Shown here piece by piece: positions 2,833-32,869 of a stretch of DNA of 64,000 nt; positions within the stretch are counted from its first letter, which is position 1, and every line of letters begins with the position of its first letter. A program made the position numbers and the translations under genes. The stretch is taken from contig OZ218955.1 of assembly GCA_965112735.1 (NCBI GenBank), forward strand, positions 1,984,001 through 2,048,000, written 5' to 3'. The notes beneath the pieces were generated by a model, which was not told where the DNA came from, searched no databases, and saw only the letters and a list, made by a program, of their open reading frames with translations. Origin of the DNA: Phaeosaccion multiseriatum. Lineage: Eukaryota > Protista > Ochrophyta, other classes.

Positions 2833-3600
2833 TCGGCTCCAGACACGCCTAACGGGGTTGGTTCTAGATCTAGGCCGCTCGTAGGCCGCCGCTAGGCCGC
2901 TCCTAGGCCGCCTCTATGCCACCTCGCTGCGAGCGGGCGAGTGGGAGAGTGTGCCCATGCCCCCTTTTTCCCTTTTTTTTTCTCCGTAGCATATACTGCG
3001 CAGGGCGGGGGAGGGGGAAAAGGCAACAATTGCCGCCGGCCGGTAGGTCGCACGTCAGGACCACGGCAGCAGCACACCGGCCGGCAGGCTGGTACTCCTC
3101 TCGCAGGACAGCCGAGGCGCGCAAGCGACGCCCCCAATAAGTAGACTTCAATAATACGAGACATATGGGAGAGCTCCGGGCCAGCCACCAGCCAGCCAAA
3201 CCAGGGGCAAATTCCCCCCCTCGGCCTATCAGCCCCAGGCGAGGTTTCTCTGGCCCCCGATAAGCAGAAGCCAGAGGCGGCCTGCGACCAGCAGAAGCCA
3301 TCACCAGCGGCGGGAAAGAGTGACAAGCCAGAAGCCAGAGGCGGCCTACCGCCGAAAGCCGAGAAGGCAGCGTTGGCCTGCGGCCAGAAGCCCGAAGCCA
3401 GGAGGGGGCTACAGCCCAGAAGCAAGGAGCCAGAGAAAAAAACCTCGTGGGGGCCGACGGCCTTGCACGTCTTGCCGGCGCAGCCACGAGACCGCGGCCT
3501 AGAAATAGGCCGAGGCCCTCTCTGAAATAGGCCGAGGCCTTTTCTGGACCGAAAAATTTCTAAAGTGAAGGTCTAGGCCGCTAGGCGTATCTGGAGCCGA
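2833..3600. mobile_element. Non-autonomous TIR DNA element (MITE-like), TCGGC-terminus family
   Basis: Left end tcggctccagacacgcctaacgg and right end ccgctaggcgtatctggagccga form a 23-bp inverted repeat with 2 mismatches. Subterminal ctaggccg repeats and internal similarity to the 7241-7987 element. No clear TSD. Confidence 0.8.
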
Positions 3601-3928
3601 AGTTGCGAAGACAGGAGGAGGCCCAACCCTCTGCTTTTTGTCAAATGCTCTCTCCTCTCAAGCTCTCTTTGATTGTGCCGAGATCCGACGGCGGTGTAAC
3701 GGGCCTAACGGGCCACTTGAAAAATTGCGCCGTTCGCAAAGGCAAGAATGGCCAGGCTCCACTACAAGAAGCAACCGGAACGACACCTCACAGTGTCCCA
3801 CGTGACAACTCATCGCCTGTCATTTATATTCACCGCTCCTCCTCCGCCCATCCCTCCGTGTGCTGCTGTATCGCCCAAGAAGAAAGGGAGGACGAGGTCT
3901 CTATTTCCCGCGCCCTGAGAGCCTGGTC

Positions 3929-4429
3929 ATGAAGGCGGAGGGAAGACAGGTAAGCACGGTTGCTGGGGAGAGCTACACAACAGGGTCGGGACTGCACAAT
4001 TTAAAAACCGCTCTGGCAGCTTCCAAGCAAGTTACCTCCTCCTCCCTCCCTCCCTCCTGTGCGGCACTCTCGACGTGTCGCTGCATCACTTGCAAAAACA
4101 TCACGCAGATGTTTGCACTGGGCTTGGCATCCCTGGTTGGGATCCCCCTCGCCACCCCCACTGCGAAAACGGCTCTGCACACCGTCGCGAGGCGCCTACC
4201 CCCCTCCGAGGGTAAGTACTGGGGGAGTAGGGGATTGGGATGTTCATCCTTCCAGCGTATTGCTGAGATGGAAACCGCTTGCGGGAGAAGGCGACAAAGC
4301 CATGACCTAGGGACATCGAACAAATAGAACAGATGTGGTCGGACGGGTGAAACGGATGGGATGGTTGCAGGCTGATTGCCCTTGACGGAGACTGCAATAG
4401 CCTTCGAATCTTGATGAGCTGTGTGTGTG

Positions 4430-20112: not shown

Positions 20113-21210
20113 TTAGCAGGGAATGGAACTATAGTCCCCGAAGGAACAAAAGCGACACGTCTGCACCCCGCCCGCTCCACAGCCCAGCCCGCCAGAGGCA
20201 CAGGACGGATCAGTCTTGCACTGCTCACCCGCTGCCGTGTTGCATTGGCAGCTCCCGGTCTCGCCATCGCCGGTGCAGGGAATGGAAACGTACGCTCCGA
20301 ATCCACAGAACCTGCAAGTCTCCTGACCGCCCGCTCCGCAGCCAATGCCCCCGTCCACACACGCGGCGTCCACCTGGCACCTCTCCCCCGCTCCAGTGTT
20401 GCACTGGCAGTCCGATGGGGCGGGGGTGGGGGGCGCAGTCTCACACGTCTCACACGTCTCACAAGTCTCACACGCTTCACACGTCTCACACGTCTCACAC
20501 GTTTCGCATGTTTCACACGTTTCGCAAACCTCGCACTCCGTCGGCACAGTGGGGCAATTGAGCCTCAACTCTGTGTGGTTCATTCCCCCGGTAGTCGCCT
20601 CGAGGGCCGCCAGGTGCGTGTCGTCAAAGTAGGTGATCGGGCGGATGGTCCCTGTCGGGGGGGGGTTGCAAGTCGGGAGTACGATAGGACGGGAGGGTAG
20701 CAGCAGCAGCAGGAGGAGGAGGAGGACCGGCAGCAGGACAGGGGGAGGGGGGGGGGGGGGGGAGATACCGGTCAGTAAGAAGGTGATTGATGAATGAGGC
20801 GACACACCTCTTAATGGGGAATGGTGTTGACGTTGGTGCAGGGCGGCATCGGTGCCGCCATATTAAAACTGGAACTGGGACTTACTGACTGGGCTGGCAG
20901 AGCACTCGTCGTTGAATGTGACAAATACGGCCTGATTCGAGCATGTTCTGCCGCAAAACTCGATGAGGCCCTGTCCCAGCGAGCTCACGACATCAAAGGC
21001 TATTGAGGCCCTGAACGCTACGCGCGTGGTGATCGAAGTGAGGGGAGGGGGTGGGGGGTGGTTAGAGAGTGGATCACCGTGTAGTGGCAGTAAAGCCCAA
21101 GCCAGCCCACTCACCCTGATTCCTGCAGTCCATGCCTGGTCGCAAGCCTGGTTGCATCCGGAAGCTGACGAACATTCCCCCTGGACAAGTTACGTTGAAG
21201 GCCCGGGCAG
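20113..21210 (-). pseudogene. Third array copy lacking start codon and signal peptide (probable pseudogene or non-secreted truncation)
   Basis: Exons 3 (20651-20113) and 2 (21017-20886) are intact. Exon 1 homology stops at ~21210 (gcccgggcag); the ATG and signal segment are replaced by a short C/T tract, and upstream homology resumes at ~21235. Confidence 0.7.
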
Positions 21211-21493
21211 ACCCATCCCCCCCCCCCTTTTCCCCTGCTATACCTTGGTTAAGGAGCGAGTATAGGAAATGAAACACAACTGTAAAGGCAGGTAATTGTG
21301 CCTGCGGGGCGCCCGGTGGGGAGGCGCTGGTGTCGCCCCCGGGGCGCACAGGCCTCGGCGTCTCGTCGCGCCTCACATGGTTTTTTTTATGTGATCATTT
21401 TTGCTTTTTCCTTTTTTGTTAGCTTACACTGTGGTCGCACTACTCCCTCTGTGATCAGGCATGGGCGCCTCATGAGAGAGGGGGCGAGATTGG

Positions 21494-23104
21494 ATGGGCG
21501 CCTTCTTGAGGCCCTCGTGCCAGCGCCAAGGCGCAGCGCTGCTCTCCGCAGTGTCATTGCTCGTGAGTGTCTCGACAAGGCGAGGAGGAGGGGCCTTCCT
21601 TCTCACGTCGCCGAAGGGATGTCGGAGTAGAGCGGAAGGATCGCGCAGGTGGCACTCCTCAGGCACAGCATCAGCGTCACGCCGTGTGTCAGTGCAGGAG
21701 TACTTGTCTGACCTGCGTAAAGTGCTTCCTCTCTCCACTCTCTCGACTGACAATGGCTTCAGGAAGGGTCGAGGGGGAAGGCAGCAAGAGGAGGAGAAAG
21801 AGCATGATGGGGACTTTTTGAACTTTCACGTAGCCTGGCCCCCCTCGTTCCAGTACGCTGAGCGGGTGAGGTATGACGAAATGGCCGCAGAGGAGCTCAA
21901 CGCGGCCGTCCGAGTGTGGGCCGAGGGGGCGTTCAACACTGGAGAGACCAAAGTGCTAAAGATGCTGGAGGGGTTCGACTTGGGGCATCTCGCCTGTCTC
22001 ATGTACCCCAGTGCCTCCTCCGAGCGGAGGACATGGTTTTGCAAGTACACGTTCCACATAGGGCTCCTTGACGAGTTTCTCTTCGAAGGAGGAGTAGGAG
22101 GGGAAGGACAAGGGGGCGAAGAGGACAGCTCCTTCGCGCTTGCCAAGCAGTGGTACGATGTACTGCTTCCGGAGGGACACAGCGACAGCGACAGCGGCAG
22201 CGAGGTCGTGCCAACACCGGCGACCATGCAAGGCCTTCCTCTGGCCCACACTTGGAGAGAAGTATGCGAAGAGGCCAAAGCTTTCGCCACGGAGGAGGAG
22301 CTTCGAGCGCTGAGAGCGCAGTTGCTGCACTCCGTTGAGGCCTCGGCCATGGAGCGCGTGGTCCGGGAGGAAATGAGAAGCAGCAGAGGGGCGACGCAGG
22401 GGGGGGGGAGGTGGTGCTTGACACTGGAAGAGTACGGGTTATTGCGGGTGAGCGCTTCCAACGCGTGGGCCTTCTTCGACGTCCCCATTCTGGCGTGGAT
22501 GAACAACGAGGATGCCGACAGTTGTGACAGCAGCAGCAGCAGCAGCACTAGAAGCGACAGCAACAACAGCGAGAACAACGATAACAGCAGTGTGCTCTGC
22601 CACCACAGCCCCGCAGTGATGCGCTACGTGTTTAACTTGGTGCTTATTGTGGACGTTTTCAACGACTGTATATCCGCAGCGGATGAGCACGACAACGAGG
22701 GGGCGCTCAACATCATCAAAATAATGCAGCAGTTGGTGATACAGCAGCAGCAGCAGCAGGAACAGCAGGAGCAGGACAGTGGGAGTTTAGCAGGCACCGG
22801 CGGAGGTGGTGGTGGCCCTGACGTGGGAAGGCTGACCAAGACTGTGGAGAGGGGGCTGCATCGCCTGCTGCAAGAGAACGAAGAGGAGCTGGCGCAAGCG
22901 GTGCGCAGCGGCCTTGTGCAGCTCGACCCGTTTACCCTGCGCACACTCTGCCAGAGCCGACAGGCGTGCCTGGGCATGGTGCATTGGCACCTCGTGGCTC
23001 GGCGATACCGCAACGCCCTGACTCTGACGGGTAAGCGCCCAGACGGCTACCCGGCCTTGAGAGTGACAATGGCGGAGGCGGAGGTGGAGGTGGAGGGGGC
23101 GTGA
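21494..23104 (+). CDS. Microbial-type class I terpene synthase (terpene cyclase), intronless, possible organelle-targeting leader
   Basis: 536-aa single ORF with ordered motifs: LACLMYP, Asp-rich-like LLDEFLFE (22070-22087), LEEYGLLR sensor Arg, NSE/DTE NDCISAADE (22661-22687) and WHLVARRY = WxxxxxRY (22985-23008). Confidence 0.85.
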   Translation: MGAFLRPSCQRQGAALLSAVSLLVSVSTRRGGGAFLLTSPKGCRSRAEGSRRWHSSGTASASRRVSVQEYLSDLRKVLPLSTLSTDNGFRKGRGGRQQEEEKEHDGDFLNFHVAWPPSFQYAERVRYDEMAAEELNAAVRVWAEGAFNTGETKVLKMLEGFDLGHLACLMYPSASSERRTWFCKYTFHIGLLDEFLFEGGVGGEGQGGEEDSSFALAKQWYDVLLPEGHSDSDSGSEVVPTPATMQGLPLAHTWREVCEEAKAFATEEELRALRAQLLHSVEASAMERVVREEMRSSRGATQGGGRWCLTLEEYGLLRVSASNAWAFFDVPILAWMNNEDADSCDSSSSSSTRSDSNNSENNDNSSVLCHHSPAVMRYVFNLVLIVDVFNDCISAADEHDNEGALNIIKIMQQLVIQQQQQQEQQEQDSGSLAGTGGGGGGPDVGRLTKTVERGLHRLLQENEEELAQAVRSGLVQLDPFTLRTLCQSRQACLGMVHWHLVARRYRNALTLTGKRPDGYPALRVTMAEAEVEVEGA

Positions 23105-24436
23105 GCTTTGGTTTCTGTTTGACTTGACCGTCCGTCTGGTGCATGGGTTGTTGCTGCGGCAGAAATCCAACTTGGTACGAGAGGAACCGATGGTTTTATG
23201 TTTGTTTTTTTCTTCTTCCCTTGGACATTTCTTAATTTAAAAGATTTATTTTTTTAATTTTTTTGAATTGAGGCCTGCTGCTATCCAATGGGATATTCTC
23301 TCTCTCACAGAGACAATAGTCTTCCAACCCTTTTGGAGGGAGGCAGGGAAAGGGGGGGGGGGGGCGGAAGAAGTTCGTGACGGTATCGAACTATGGTCTT
23401 CGCGACGCCTCCAGCCTGACACACAGGCAACGAGGCCTCCCGTGCGAGGACATGACCCGCTCCTTGTCCGCTCAAGCTGTATGCCCGTAAGCCATCACCC
23501 GGTACCTTCGCCCCTCTTGGCTGTCCCCTCTCCCACTCTCCTTCCCTTCTCCACCAGTATCCCCGGCAGGTATACCGTCCTTCGCTTTGTAAAAAAAGTG
23601 GTACCTTGTACAGCACCGCCCCCAATCTTCGCTAGGGACGGCACACGAGAATCAGGGACAGAGCTGACAAATCCTCGCCCTTTCACTCTCCTCGGGGGGC
23701 CAACATTCGTCTGAGGAGAAGTAACACGCTCGACTCAAGCCTTGGGAGAGGAGTCTTCATCCCTCCATTCCTTCCTTCCTTCCATCCTTCCTTCCTTGCT
23801 TCCTTCCTTGCTTCCTTCCTTCCTTCTCAACGGTGCCCATCAAGGCCAGTCTCGAGTGTCGCATGGCCAGGCACGTAGAGCGTCAGGACAAGTACATAAT
23901 AGTGTACATAATATAGCACTCCCACAGAGGCGCCTAGGCGTGACGACACGACCGCGGAACCTGCTCCTCGCGACCTCCACAAACAGCGCGCGCTCTCTCT
24001 CTCTCTCTTCCTCGCCTTGGATGATTGGAGACGGACCATTCCGCGCGAGAGGTGTTTCGCCCTCCTTCTTCCTCTTCTTTCCATGTGTCTCTCAGCTGAC
24101 GCGAGCGTGCCCATGCTCTTGGTACTCCTCCTCCTCATTTCATCTCAGCGCCCTTCCGAATCCTTGCCTGCTCTGTTCCGTGCCTCCCTACATCGGTAAA
24201 GTGTGAAGTGTGAATGTGCTCTCCGCCGCTCCAGATGAGCAGCCCCGTGTCACGGCAATTTCCGCCCCTCGGTCTCGCTACGCCCCAAGTCCCTCAATCA
24301 AAACACACACGCACGCGAGCGCTGTACATCGCATTGTGTTCACGCCACCTCCTTTGCCCTTTGCCCTTTGCCCTTCGCCCTTTCGTCCTTCTCACGCAAA
24401 CAAATGTTCTTTTGACTCAAGTTCCTCACTCATCGC

Positions 24437-26975: not shown

Positions 26976-28085
26976 TCTCCTTCCACTTCCCCCTTTATTC
27001 TGTCGCCGCCGTTTGGTGCCATGCATGTTCCAATCCACCCACCCATCCCCATCTCCTTTGACACTTTGACGCAAACAAACAACCAAACAAACAAATGAAC
27101 ACCAACCACACAAGGTCGGTGTACGAGCGTGCCCTCGATGTGGACCACAAGAACCGCGGCACCTGGCTCAAGTACGCAGAGATGGAAATGCGGAACAAAT
27201 TCGTCAACCATGCACGGAACATTTGGGACCGTGCAACGACCCTGCTGCCACGAGTGGACCAGTTCTGGTACAAGTATGCCTATATGGAGGAGATGGTGGG
27301 GGAAATAGGCAAGGCCCGAGCCATCTTCGAGCGCTGGATGGAGTGGGAGCCTGATGTAAACGGATGGGGCGCTTACATAATGTTTGAGATGCGTCAGGAG
27401 GAAGTGGGCCTCGCGAGGAAGGTTATGGAGAGGTACGTTACTTAGTGGCCGTTTCACGGTTGGGGGTGGCAGATGGAAGGGTGGAATCGGGGGCATGCAC
27501 GCATGCACGCACGCACGGACGCACGCACACACGCACGCACACACGCACGCACGCACACACACATATCACATGCAGCAACAACAACGAACTCACCTGAACG
27601 CACCCTTCTTGTTTGGATCTTGTTTGTCACTCCCTCTCACGCGCAGGTATGTGAACTGCATTCCATCCACGGCGTCTTTCCTCAAGTGGGCGAGATGGGA
27701 GGAGAAGCAGGTGAGGGTTTCGCGAAATTCCGCTGTTTCGTCTCTGGAAAGGGAAGGGGGATGGCACACAGCACATGTAACTGACATCATCCTTCGTTTT
27801 CTTTGCAGCAGCAGCAGCTCCTTATTATTCTCTTGTCTCTCTCTCTCTCTCTGTGTCTCTGTGTATGTGTGTGTTGTCACCCCCCCCCCCTCCCCTCCCC
27901 AGGGTCAGAAGCAGCTCGCTCGGCAAGTGTACGAGAAGGCGCTGACGGAGCTCAACGAGGAGGAGCGCACAGAGAAGCTCTTCATCAGCTTCGCCAAGTT
28001 CGAGGAGAGGTGCAAAGAGATCGACAGGGCACGCGTCATCTACAAGTTCTCTCTGGACCAGAGCAGCAAGGACCAGGTGTGTGCG

Positions 28086-29843: not shown

Positions 29844-31534
29844 TACACACAAACTCACGGCATGTACACCGGTACTCAATACACAAATCAGGTGCTGGGG
29901 CAGGCCATCGGCCAGTGCAAGAAGGAAAAGCTGTTCAAGAAATACATTGAGCTCGAGCTGCAATTGGGAGAGGTGGACCGCTGCCGCATGCTCTATAGCA
30001 AATACCTCGAGGCCATGCCCTACAACTGCACCGCTTGGGCCAACTTTGCTCAGCTAGAGAGCAGTGTGGGCGAGCTGGAGAGGGCGAGAGCGGTGTTTGA
30101 GCTGGCCATTGAGCAGGAGGAGTTAGACATGCCAGAGGCTCTGTGGAAGGCCTACATTGACTTTGAGATTAAGTCAGGGGAGGCGGACAGGGCCAGGGAG
30201 CTGTACAAACGCCTCCTCGACAAGACTCAGCACGTCAAGGTGAGGATGGCAGTGGATGGGAGGGGAATATATTTTATTGACTTCTTACAGGCATCACCTA
30301 AGAAACTGAAAGTGTGATTGTGAGTGTGTGCGTGTGTATATGTGCGCGCGTGAATGGGAGGGGTGGGGAGTGAGAAGTGTAGTGAGGATGGCAGTGGATG
30401 CGGTGCGGCTCCTGGTTGGGCCTGTTCGAGGGCTAGGTCTAGGGCTGGGGCACCATTGCCGACCACCGGGCCGAATCCCCTCGGTATTCCGTCTCCGGAC
30501 CACTGTTGCGGTCTTTCCGAGGGCTTGACATACAGACCACATACCCATTTCCTCATCTCACTCCCTCCCTCCCCTCTCTCCCCTCCCTCCTTCCCTCCCT
30601 CTCTCCCTCCCTCCCTCCCCCAACTCCCTTCCTCCCTCCCCCAACTCCTCAGGTGTGGACGTCCTACGCCAAGTTCGAGCAGCTGTCTGGCGACGGCATG
30701 GCGGCAGCACGTGACGTGTACACAGCAGGTTACGCCGAACTGAAACGGCAGGGACTCCGAGACGAGAGGGTGGTGCTGCTGGAGGACTGGCGCAACGCGG
30801 AGAAGAGCGTCGCTCAGGCCGACGGAGGGGAGGGATTGAAGAAGGTGAGTGAGGAGTGAGGGAAGAAGGCAGACAGTGGCGGAAATTGAATGGATGAGCA
30901 AACGTATTGTTTAGGTAGGTGGGTAGGTAAGTAGGTGGGAGGGGAGGAGGAAGAAGGTGGTAAGGTAGGTAAGTGTCGGTAGGTAGATGGTTCGGTAGAT
31001 CGGTAGGTAGGTAGGTAGATTCAATCAATGAACTGAACAACTAACCATCCTACCTGCCCCCCATCGCCCCCCCAACCCGAACCACCACAACCCAAACACA
31101 AACCCTACCACAACCACAAAACCCCCCCTCATTAGGTAACCGCCATGCTGCCTCGAAGATTCAAGAAGAAACGCATGCTCACCTCGGACTCCGGAGAGGA
31201 CATGGGATGGGAGGAGTACTACGATTATCAATTCCCAGACGACGAGAAGGCCCCGGCCAATCTCAAGATCTTGGAGATGGCGCAAAAGTGGAAGAGTGGA
31301 GGGGGGATGGGCGCGATGCTGGCAAACGCCAAGAAGAGGAAGGCGCAGGAGATGGGGGAAAGCGGTGGGGAGGGTGGGGGTGGGGGTGGGGGTGGGGGTG
31401 GGGGGAGGGAGGAGGAGAAGGGTGGCGAAGACGGAGAGGGGAAGGAGGATGAGGAGGGGGATGAGGACGAGGGGAGGGAGGAGGAGAAAGGCGGCGAAGG
31501 CCGGAAGGACATGGACGACGACCAAGAGGATTGA
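26072..31534 (+). CDS. CRNKL1: Crooked neck pre-mRNA splicing factor (CRNKL1/CLF1/SYF3), HAT-repeat protein
   Basis: 12 exons: 26072-26224, 26541-26662, 27115-27432, 27647-27710, 27903-28076, 28313-28370, 28722-28849, 28985-29098, 29483-29623, 29892-30239, 30653-30844, 31136-31534. Motifs [89 protein letters not shown]. Confidence 0.96.
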
Positions 31535-31977: not shown

Positions 31978-32141
31978 AAGCAAGTCGTCTGACCATCACA
32001 GGAGAGCTGAATAAGTTGGCTCATAACATCGTCGCCGGCCGAGAGATGCTGGGAGTGCACTACCGCTGTGACGGCGTGGAGGGCATGAAGCTGGGGGAGG
32101 AGGTGGCGATGGCCTACTTGCAGGCCGAGCTCGATCGACAG
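31978..32141 (+). pseudogene. Orphan exon encoding C-terminal active-site segment of a vanadium-dependent haloperoxidase
   Basis: Manual translation (not in ORF track): ASRLTITGELNKLAHNIVAGREMLGVHYRCDGVEGMKLGEEVAMAYLQAELDRQ. This matches the algal/cyanobacterial vBPO pattern LT..GE(L/I)NKLA.N...GR.M.G(V/I)HYR.DG..G..LGE. Preceded by a pyrimidine tract plus AG and followed by GT donors. No upstream vHPO exons seen. Confidence 0.75.
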
Positions 32142-32869
32142 GTGGGTGAGGAGGGAGGGGGGCGGTGTGGAGGCTCCTAGTCTCACTCCCTCCCTCGCTC
32201 ACTCACTCACTCACGCACTCTCTCACTCACTCGCTCACTCACTCACTCTCTCACTCACTCACTCGCTCACTCACTTACGCACTCACTCACTCACTCACTC
32301 ACCCACCCTCCCGGACCAAGTGAAGGCCGTTTGTAGTTGAGTTGGTCAGAGAGACTCTCGTCTCCTTGTCGTCTCCTTGTCGTCTCCTTGTCGTCTCCTT
32401 GTCGCCTCGTTGGATAGAGGCGGTCAAGGATGGATATCAAGGTCAAGGAGGGCCGTGGGCGAGTCCACTCGTCCTGTAGGACGGTCCGTCCGTCCGTCCG
32501 TCCGTCCGTCCATCCATCCGAGCTCGAGGCCCTCTCTGGAGTTTGGTGGGGGCGGTTCCCTTGCTTCCTTACACACCCTTACTTACCTCTCTTCCACACT
32601 GCTGCACATGTACTCTTTCGGTGTGCCGTTACAATACCCGCCACCTCACTTGGATGACCAACTCCCTTCCGATCCGAAGCGACCCAACCGACGCCATCCC
32701 TAGACCTGAAATTCCATTGGAGACCTTTACGAAGCTCTGACGCACTACCTCACAGCGAATGAATGAATCATTCGGGAGGGAGGGCTTCGATCAGAGAAAG
32801 AGTGTGGGTGTCGCCCTCTCCCCTCTCCCCCCCCCCCAACTGGCTCAACGCAATGCTGCTGCTCCACAC

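Follow-up and report, generated by a model that had tools for sequence, protein, structure and literature searches.

A divergent homologue of class I terpene cyclases, with prokaryote-style relatives, encoded by an uninterrupted open reading frame in the stramenopile alga Phaeosaccion multiseriatum

Terpene cyclases are known from plants, fungi, bacteria, social amoebae, red algae, soft corals, viruses and some arthropods (PMC11665903), a published distribution that does not include stramenopiles (PMC11665903), and, according to a review of genome mining in eukaryotic algae, almost all of the 'terpene synthases' in their genomes belong to the carotenoid pathway (PMC7073580). The closest parallels in concept to the gene described here are the MTPSLs of non-seed plants and the TPSs of red algae, social amoebae, octocorals and arthropods, in each of which a bacterial/fungal-type alpha-domain cyclase is found in a eukaryote and is usually attributed to horizontal transfer. 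The closest described proteins in terms of fold are the bacterial single-domain PF19086 cyclases, such as selinadiene synthase (4okm), T-muurolol synthase (9hqi) and the N-domain of geosmin synthase (5dz2). In a literature search of incomplete coverage no class I cyclase of a stramenopile was found, in agreement with the statement in the original prediction that no well-characterised example was known. A microbial-type cyclase residing in a eukaryote is a known concept, and what is unusual in the present case is the host lineage, the extreme divergence of the protein and the alteration of residues at the diphosphate site.

The window, to which all positions refer unless another contig is named, is the whole stretch of 64,000 nucleotides that was analysed (assembly GCA_965112735.1, contig OZ218955.1, positions 1,984,001 to 2,048,000 of the forward strand). 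An ATG-started open reading frame (ORF) of 536 codons plus stop was found exactly where it had been placed, at 21494..23104 of the + strand, within an open frame of 542 aa, so that just six sense codons lie 5' of the ATG. All four of the motifs that had been claimed (DEFLFE, EEYGLLR, NDCISAADE and W498 followed by R504-Y505) are present and in the claimed order, and the GC content at the three codon positions (0.62/0.47/0.73) exhibits strong periodicity. The features are as follows.

21494..23104, + strand: whole ORF, divergent class I terpene cyclase homologue, 536 aa plus stop
21494..21823, + strand: N-terminal extension, aa 1-110, without homology to cyclases and with no Pfam family
21824..23041, + strand: terpene cyclase alpha-domain core, aa 111-516, aligning end to end with the relative P0001
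22070..22087, + strand: variant Asp-rich motif D193-E-F-L-F-E198, aa 193-198, at the C-terminal end of a long helix in the model
22445..22447, + strand: R318 of EEYGLLR, in the invariant column of the diphosphate-sensor Arg
22514..22600, + strand: low-complexity insert rich in Ser/Asn, aa 341-369, modelled as a disordered loop
22661..22687, + strand: complete NSE triad N390-D-C-I-S394-A-A-D-E398, aa 390-398, from the alignment
22682..22684, + strand: D397, the residue directly before the NSE Glu, Arg or Lys in 19/19 other aligned cyclases
22724..22831, + strand: poly-Q/poly-G low-complexity insert, aa 411-446, missing from P0001 and P0002
23003..23008, + strand: C-terminal R504-Y505 pair, in invariant columns, preceded by W498

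The protein is not recognized as a terpene cyclase when it is compared directly with known families. With the Pfam Terpene_syn_C_2 profile (PF19086) it scored 11.3-12.4 bits (E 0.13-0.3), below the gathering threshold of 23.7 bits, and direct family scans with the whole protein and with its halves returned sub-threshold matches only, while NCBIfam gave a faint match to encapsulin-cargo terpene cyclase (E=0.019). The HMMER check against PF19086 that had been suggested for the original prediction, if taken literally, therefore fails (11-12 versus 23.7 bits), and intermediate sequences are needed for recognition. Similarly, phmmer with the single query sequence against the PDB returned nothing but low-complexity artefacts, hhalign of the query alone with a profile of canonical cyanobacterial cyclases gave no recognition (E=0.14), and word-indexed searches for homologues, whether made with the query or with the alignment, gave no match, low-complexity words having probably swamped the candidates. 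A protein-language-model search placed Terpene_syn_C_2 clusters at all of its ten best matches (score 0.91, 193 shared features), and it counts as independent support because no use was made of the alignment described below.

Recognition was obtained through two intermediates. An exhaustive HMMER reading of 1.84 billion representative proteins yielded a single match, P0001 (439 aa, E=7e-9), which in a pairwise BLASTP comparison aligned with the query across aa 111-516 (2e-19), and whose sole other relative was P0002 (424 aa, 36% identity). Both of them pass the PF19086 gathering score, with 28 bits for P0001 and 31.7 bits for P0002. A profile built from the three members matched only class I terpene cyclases in the PDB (14/14; best match T-muurolol synthase, E=7e-7), and hhalign aligned it with a profile of 13 canonical cyanobacterial cyclases at 97.4% (E=1.5e-11, 294 columns). 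The product of the ORF is thus, with high confidence, a class I terpene-cyclase-fold homologue of bacterial/fungal type, a membership that is established transitively since the query itself falls below the Pfam cut-off and is not recognized by hhalign on its own. The class proposed originally is in this way upheld by the P0001/P0002 chain, by the family profile and by the fold match described below. Collections of metagenome, viral and genome contigs, searched for relatives, gave no further family members.

For structure prediction, an alignment of 20 sequences was assembled from the core of the query, P0001, P0002 and cyanobacterial cyclases. AlphaFold returned from it a model with pLDDT 76 and pTM 0.80, in which low confidence is restricted to the low-complexity inserts, as compared with a pLDDT of 35 from the single sequence. 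The top 50 Foldseek matches of the model were class I cyclases throughout. With VIA-align the model superimposed on selinadiene synthase 4okm with Z=32.6 and a root mean square deviation of 2.7 Å over 317 residues, and on diterpene, sesquiterpene, 2-methylisoborneol and sesterterpene synthases with Z values of 28-31; against the ESM Atlas, cyclases gave TM values (by target) of 0.77-0.81 and polyprenyl synthases much lower ones. The predicted structure corroborates the cyclase fold, and it is not independent proof of it because the alignment behind the model includes cyclases.

In the same alignment ten positions are invariant in 20/20 sequences, namely W142, P172, D193, Y314, R318, N390, S394, N406, R504 and Y505. 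Since D193, Y314, R318, N390, S394, R504 and Y505 occupy invariant columns, the motif pattern reflects homology and not chance. The third residue of the NSE triad, E398, also falls in a conserved column. In the model, both the Asp-rich motif and the NSE triad are situated where a long helix reaches its C-terminus, which is the location to be expected of them on helices D and H. In the Asp-rich motif the first and last acidic residues are retained and the second is changed (D194E). P0001 and P0002 carry DDLFAE at this position and the N-domains of geosmin synthases DDHFLE, so that there is nothing unusual in a spacing of six residues that ends in Glu; the D-to-E replacement at position 2 is found also in a canonical cyanobacterial cyclase with the motif DEQCD, which scores 138 bits with PF19086. 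The DExxxE sequence would therefore be a mild variant of the Asp-rich motif. The motif is less odd than its original description as non-canonical would suggest, the D-to-E change at the second position being its sole departure, and the argument drawn from it for an unusual chemistry is a weak one, given the DDxxxE motifs of the relatives and of geosmin synthase and the D-E pair of a canonical cyclase.

A departure that the original prediction had missed may be of greater consequence. At Asp397, directly before the Glu of the NSE triad, all 19 of the other aligned cyclases carry Arg or Lys. We take the basic residue at this position to be the one that touches the diphosphate in the structures of pentalenene synthase and epi-isozizaene synthase, and, with this assumption, the reversal of charge may alter substrate binding. 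D194E and Asp397, together with the terminal branch of 1.63 changes per site found in the phylogenetic analysis described below, are compatible with a relaxed or altered function. The same three features, along with the many low-complexity inserts, are what speaks for a protein that has kept the terpene-cyclase fold and, through drift after transfer, lost or changed its catalysis, becoming a pseudoenzyme or a binding protein, or else an enzyme that handles the diphosphate in a changed manner. However, the frame of 536 codons is intact and its codon-position GC periodicity is strong, the D-E pair is shared with a canonical cyanobacterial cyclase, and the first Asp, the full NSE triad, the sensor Arg and the RY pair have all been kept, which is unlikely after long neutral drift. 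By taking both sides into account, loss or change of catalysis is considered rather unlikely, and a catalytically active cyclase, as we infer from the conserved residues, is the somewhat favoured reading.

When set beside the bacterial PF19086 cyclases (4okm, 9hqi and 5dz2), the algal protein shares with them the alpha-helical fold (Z 28-33) and, arranged alike and placed in invariant columns, the NSE triad, sensor Arg and RY pair, together with an Asp-rich motif in variant form, the DDxxxE-type spacing of which is that of geosmin synthase. In contrast to these enzymes, with which its sequence identity is just 12-17%, it lies below the Pfam cut-off, has Glu as the second of the acidic residues and, in place of Arg/Lys, Asp397, carries an N-terminal extension of 110 aa and about 100 residues of low-complexity sequence, and is the product of a eukaryotic nuclear gene. 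The two relatives are closer to the query in some respects and not in others. They align with it collinearly across the whole core at 19-25% identity and share family-specific features with it, e.g. the WP start and the LP-G segment; however, at 424-439 aa they are without the low-complexity inserts, they have the canonical DDLFAE and an Arg ahead of the NSE Glu, and their genes have a GC content of 33-39% (GC3 25-32%) whereas that of the query is 61% (GC3 73%).

At the DNA level the gene consists of a single exon, as had been claimed, because the region homologous to the relatives, aa 111-516, can be followed in a single frame that no stop interrupts. In-frame GT..AG candidates occur within the AG-rich low-complexity inserts (e.g. 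22521-22616, 96 nt), as is expected by chance in AG-rich repeats. The inserts total about 100 residues and resemble other coding low-complexity stretches of the host genome; the poly-S, poly-Q and poly-G runs noticed in the original reading are all present and appear in the model as low-confidence loops or as a helix extension. A four-codon upstream ORF (MGAS-stop; 21461-21475, + strand), 33 bases before the main one, opens with 10 bases, ATGGGCGCCT, that are also the first of the main ORF; it may have arisen by a small duplication, or else serve in regulation as a uORF.

M1 is the sole in-frame Met ahead of aa 129, and the conserved core begins at aa 111, so that the extension belongs to the protein, provided that the gene is a single exon. 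From hydropathy and composition, the extension consists of a moderately hydrophobic segment (aa 13-27) followed by GGGAF and then by a Ser/Arg-rich stretch that is poor in acidic residues. This arrangement, with a Phe after the predicted cleavage site, resembles the signal-plus-transit leader of algae with complex plastids, and the extension may thus be a plastid/ER leader. In that case the substrate would more likely be GPP or GGPP of the plastid, and otherwise FPP of the cytosol.

Since all the known relatives are prokaryote-style and the ORF lacks introns, the possibility was considered that it derives from bacterial contamination or misassembly rather than from the nuclear genome of the alga. 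Its position is about 2.0 Mb from the start of a chromosome-scale contig, one of the 22 that make up a 67-Mb assembly, and among the host genes that flank it is a downstream gene of the crooked-neck/CRNKL1 type, with HAT repeats, in which the Pfam profile is matched in at least three separate pieces over about 3 kb.

27098-27436, + strand: crooked-neck profile piece, Pfam profile match
27918-28055, + strand: crooked-neck profile piece, Pfam profile match
30039-30209, + strand: crooked-neck profile piece, Pfam profile match

The separation of these pieces indicates that introns occur in the neighbourhood of the cyclase gene, so that the claim that every neighbouring gene is spliced holds for the one neighbour that was checked. 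Contigs from four public genomic DNA runs of one sample reproduced 21181-22731 and 22778-23754 with zero differences and continue past the ends of the ORF with an even depth of coverage, and, of the words sampled from the ORF, 69% also occur in a run of a second study; thus, the sequence of the ORF is not an artefact of the assembly. The GC and GC3 values agree with those of the host and differ from those of the relatives, and the low-complexity inserts are of eukaryotic style. By its position in the contig, its multi-exon crooked-neck neighbour, its host-like GC and GC3 and its host-like inserts, contamination is effectively refuted.

The gene is present in a single copy in the host genome, in which no PF19086, PF03936 or PF06330 genes were detected by a search method that can be considered to work since it recovered cyclases in 26 of 401 cyanobacteria. 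This result bears on whether the gene might have arisen by retroposition from a terpene synthase gene of the alga that contained introns, or else be an ancient eukaryotic gene that has been vertically inherited. Its uninterrupted frame would fit with retroposition. However, the genome contains no paralogue, no parent gene and no other terpene synthase family, and no eukaryotic relative is found among the 1.84e9 representatives, so that both versions are judged very improbable. The original prediction had left the choice between horizontal acquisition and retroposition. Transfer is the part that is favoured, the relatives being prokaryote-style only and one of their contigs cyanobacterial, whereas retroposition from a host parent is unsupported, there being neither a paralogue nor an intron-bearing parent nor any other cyclase gene.

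P0001 is encoded on a bacterial contig of 7530 bp from an ENA metagenome, which also carries genes for a GUN4-like protein, a VWA protein and an NspV-type restriction enzyme with its methyltransferase, as well as for an RtcB-family ligase that shares 95% identity with the RtcB of Caldora/Symploca. The latter are marine filamentous cyanobacteria, and the contig can be assigned by sequence to a cyanobacterium of this kind. The ligase was called as two overlapping ORFs, at 3476-4060 and 2877-3581 of that contig. The cyclase was sought without a match in five genomes of Caldora, Symploca and Moorena, and no close relative was found in the 401 sampled cyanobacterial genomes, in which there were two weak matches, both to ordinary cyclases; thus, a cyclase of the P0001 type is a rare accessory gene. 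In one cyanobacterial genome (G341:C116) the contig that carries a two-domain geosmin-synthase-like gene also encodes, at a distance of about 3-4 kb from it, a divergent cyclase of 397 aa (92 bits to PF19086), and a second genome (G289) contains a near-identical gene for a 397-aa cyclase.

The P0002 contig belongs to a very fragmented assembly (GCA_044343285.1) and has a GC content of 34% and compact, overlapping genes. The neighbours of P0002 are proteins of 1361 aa and 964 aa, with overlapping start and stop codons, one of which has a CBM_5_12 module along with weak signals of phage-tail type. A phage origin was considered and not adopted, as the tail-protein hints given by the language model were without confirmation (PHROGs matches were weak and to families with no assigned function, and tblastn against phage genomes was blank), and the contig may come from a bacterium, a prophage or a virus.

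Maximum-likelihood analysis grouped the query with P0001 and P0002 in a clade (support 100/99) that is set apart by a long branch from the other cyanobacterial cyclases, and the terminal branch leading to the query is itself long (1.63 changes per site). These are the only three sequences of the subclade among about 15 billion proteins. Acquisition of the gene from bacteria is considered probable. The direction, from bacterium to alga, is one that we infer, the three-member clade being one that cannot be rooted, from the overwhelmingly prokaryotic and fungal distribution of the family, the uninterrupted ORF and the absence of another eukaryotic member. From the full amelioration of the gene, the 110-aa N-terminal extension and the inserts, the acquisition would be an old one, and the proposal that the gene has been resident for long is supported by its host-like composition and host-style low-complexity sequence. 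None of the microbial-type TPSs of other eukaryotes is a sequence relative of the query among the 1.84e9 representatives, and the algal gene is a separate acquisition, from a different and much rarer subclade than theirs.

With these assumptions, the following sequence of events can be proposed. An ancestor of the alga would have taken the gene from a bacterium, and after the transfer the gene would have come to the base composition of the host and gained the extension, possibly a targeting leader, and the host-style low-complexity loops. By analogy with the family, D193 and E198 together with N390, S394 and E398 would hold a trinuclear Mg2+ cluster, which with R318 and the R504-Y505 pair would bind and ionise the diphosphate of a C10-C20 prenyl diphosphate, and the resulting carbocation would be cyclised within the helical pocket. 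The explanation as a whole, namely a single-domain alpha-fold class I cyclase of bacterial/fungal type, acquired from bacteria and putatively active, is the one to which we incline, with some reserve. A bolder version, which is regarded as doubtful, would make the protein an active, organelle-targeted cyclase and the first eukaryotic member of an unrecognised, Pfam-invisible clade shared only with rare marine prokaryotes, in which the altered diphosphate site (D194E and Asp397) would lead to unusual handling of the substrate or to a novel terpene scaffold, the host being an alga with an already heavy investment in polyketides.

As to the latter, the host genome contains at least 165 matches to the ketoacyl-synthase profile PF00109, many of them in tandem with a spacing of about 5-6 kb and within open frames of up to 4148 aa, which points to arrays of giant modular type I polyketide synthases. 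Such sites are found on contigs C1 (1.19-1.41 and 2.37-2.46 Mb), C2 (0.50-0.53), C4 (2.00-2.03), C8 (1.91-1.95), C7, C13, C15 and C16. Within the window, a short ORF on the + strand (32016-32180, 54 aa) contains the sequence GVHYRCD...G..LGEEVA, which we take to be like the last motif of the acid phosphatase/vanadium haloperoxidase superfamily; it has no Pfam match and scant room upstream for a full gene. A cluster of the cyclase with a haloperoxidase-like gene is not claimed, the two lying 9 kb apart with the crooked-neck gene between them.

A cyclase resident in a stramenopile alga would lengthen the list of eukaryotic cyclases and, if this reading holds, would be another case of the entry of bacterial natural-product genes into algae. 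Because the gene is invisible to standard Pfam-based mining, other equally divergent cyclases may go unnoticed by such an approach. The clade of three sequences offers a compact target for enzymology, and, since the host genome is rich in polyketide synthases, a terpene product could belong to the chemical ecology of the alga.
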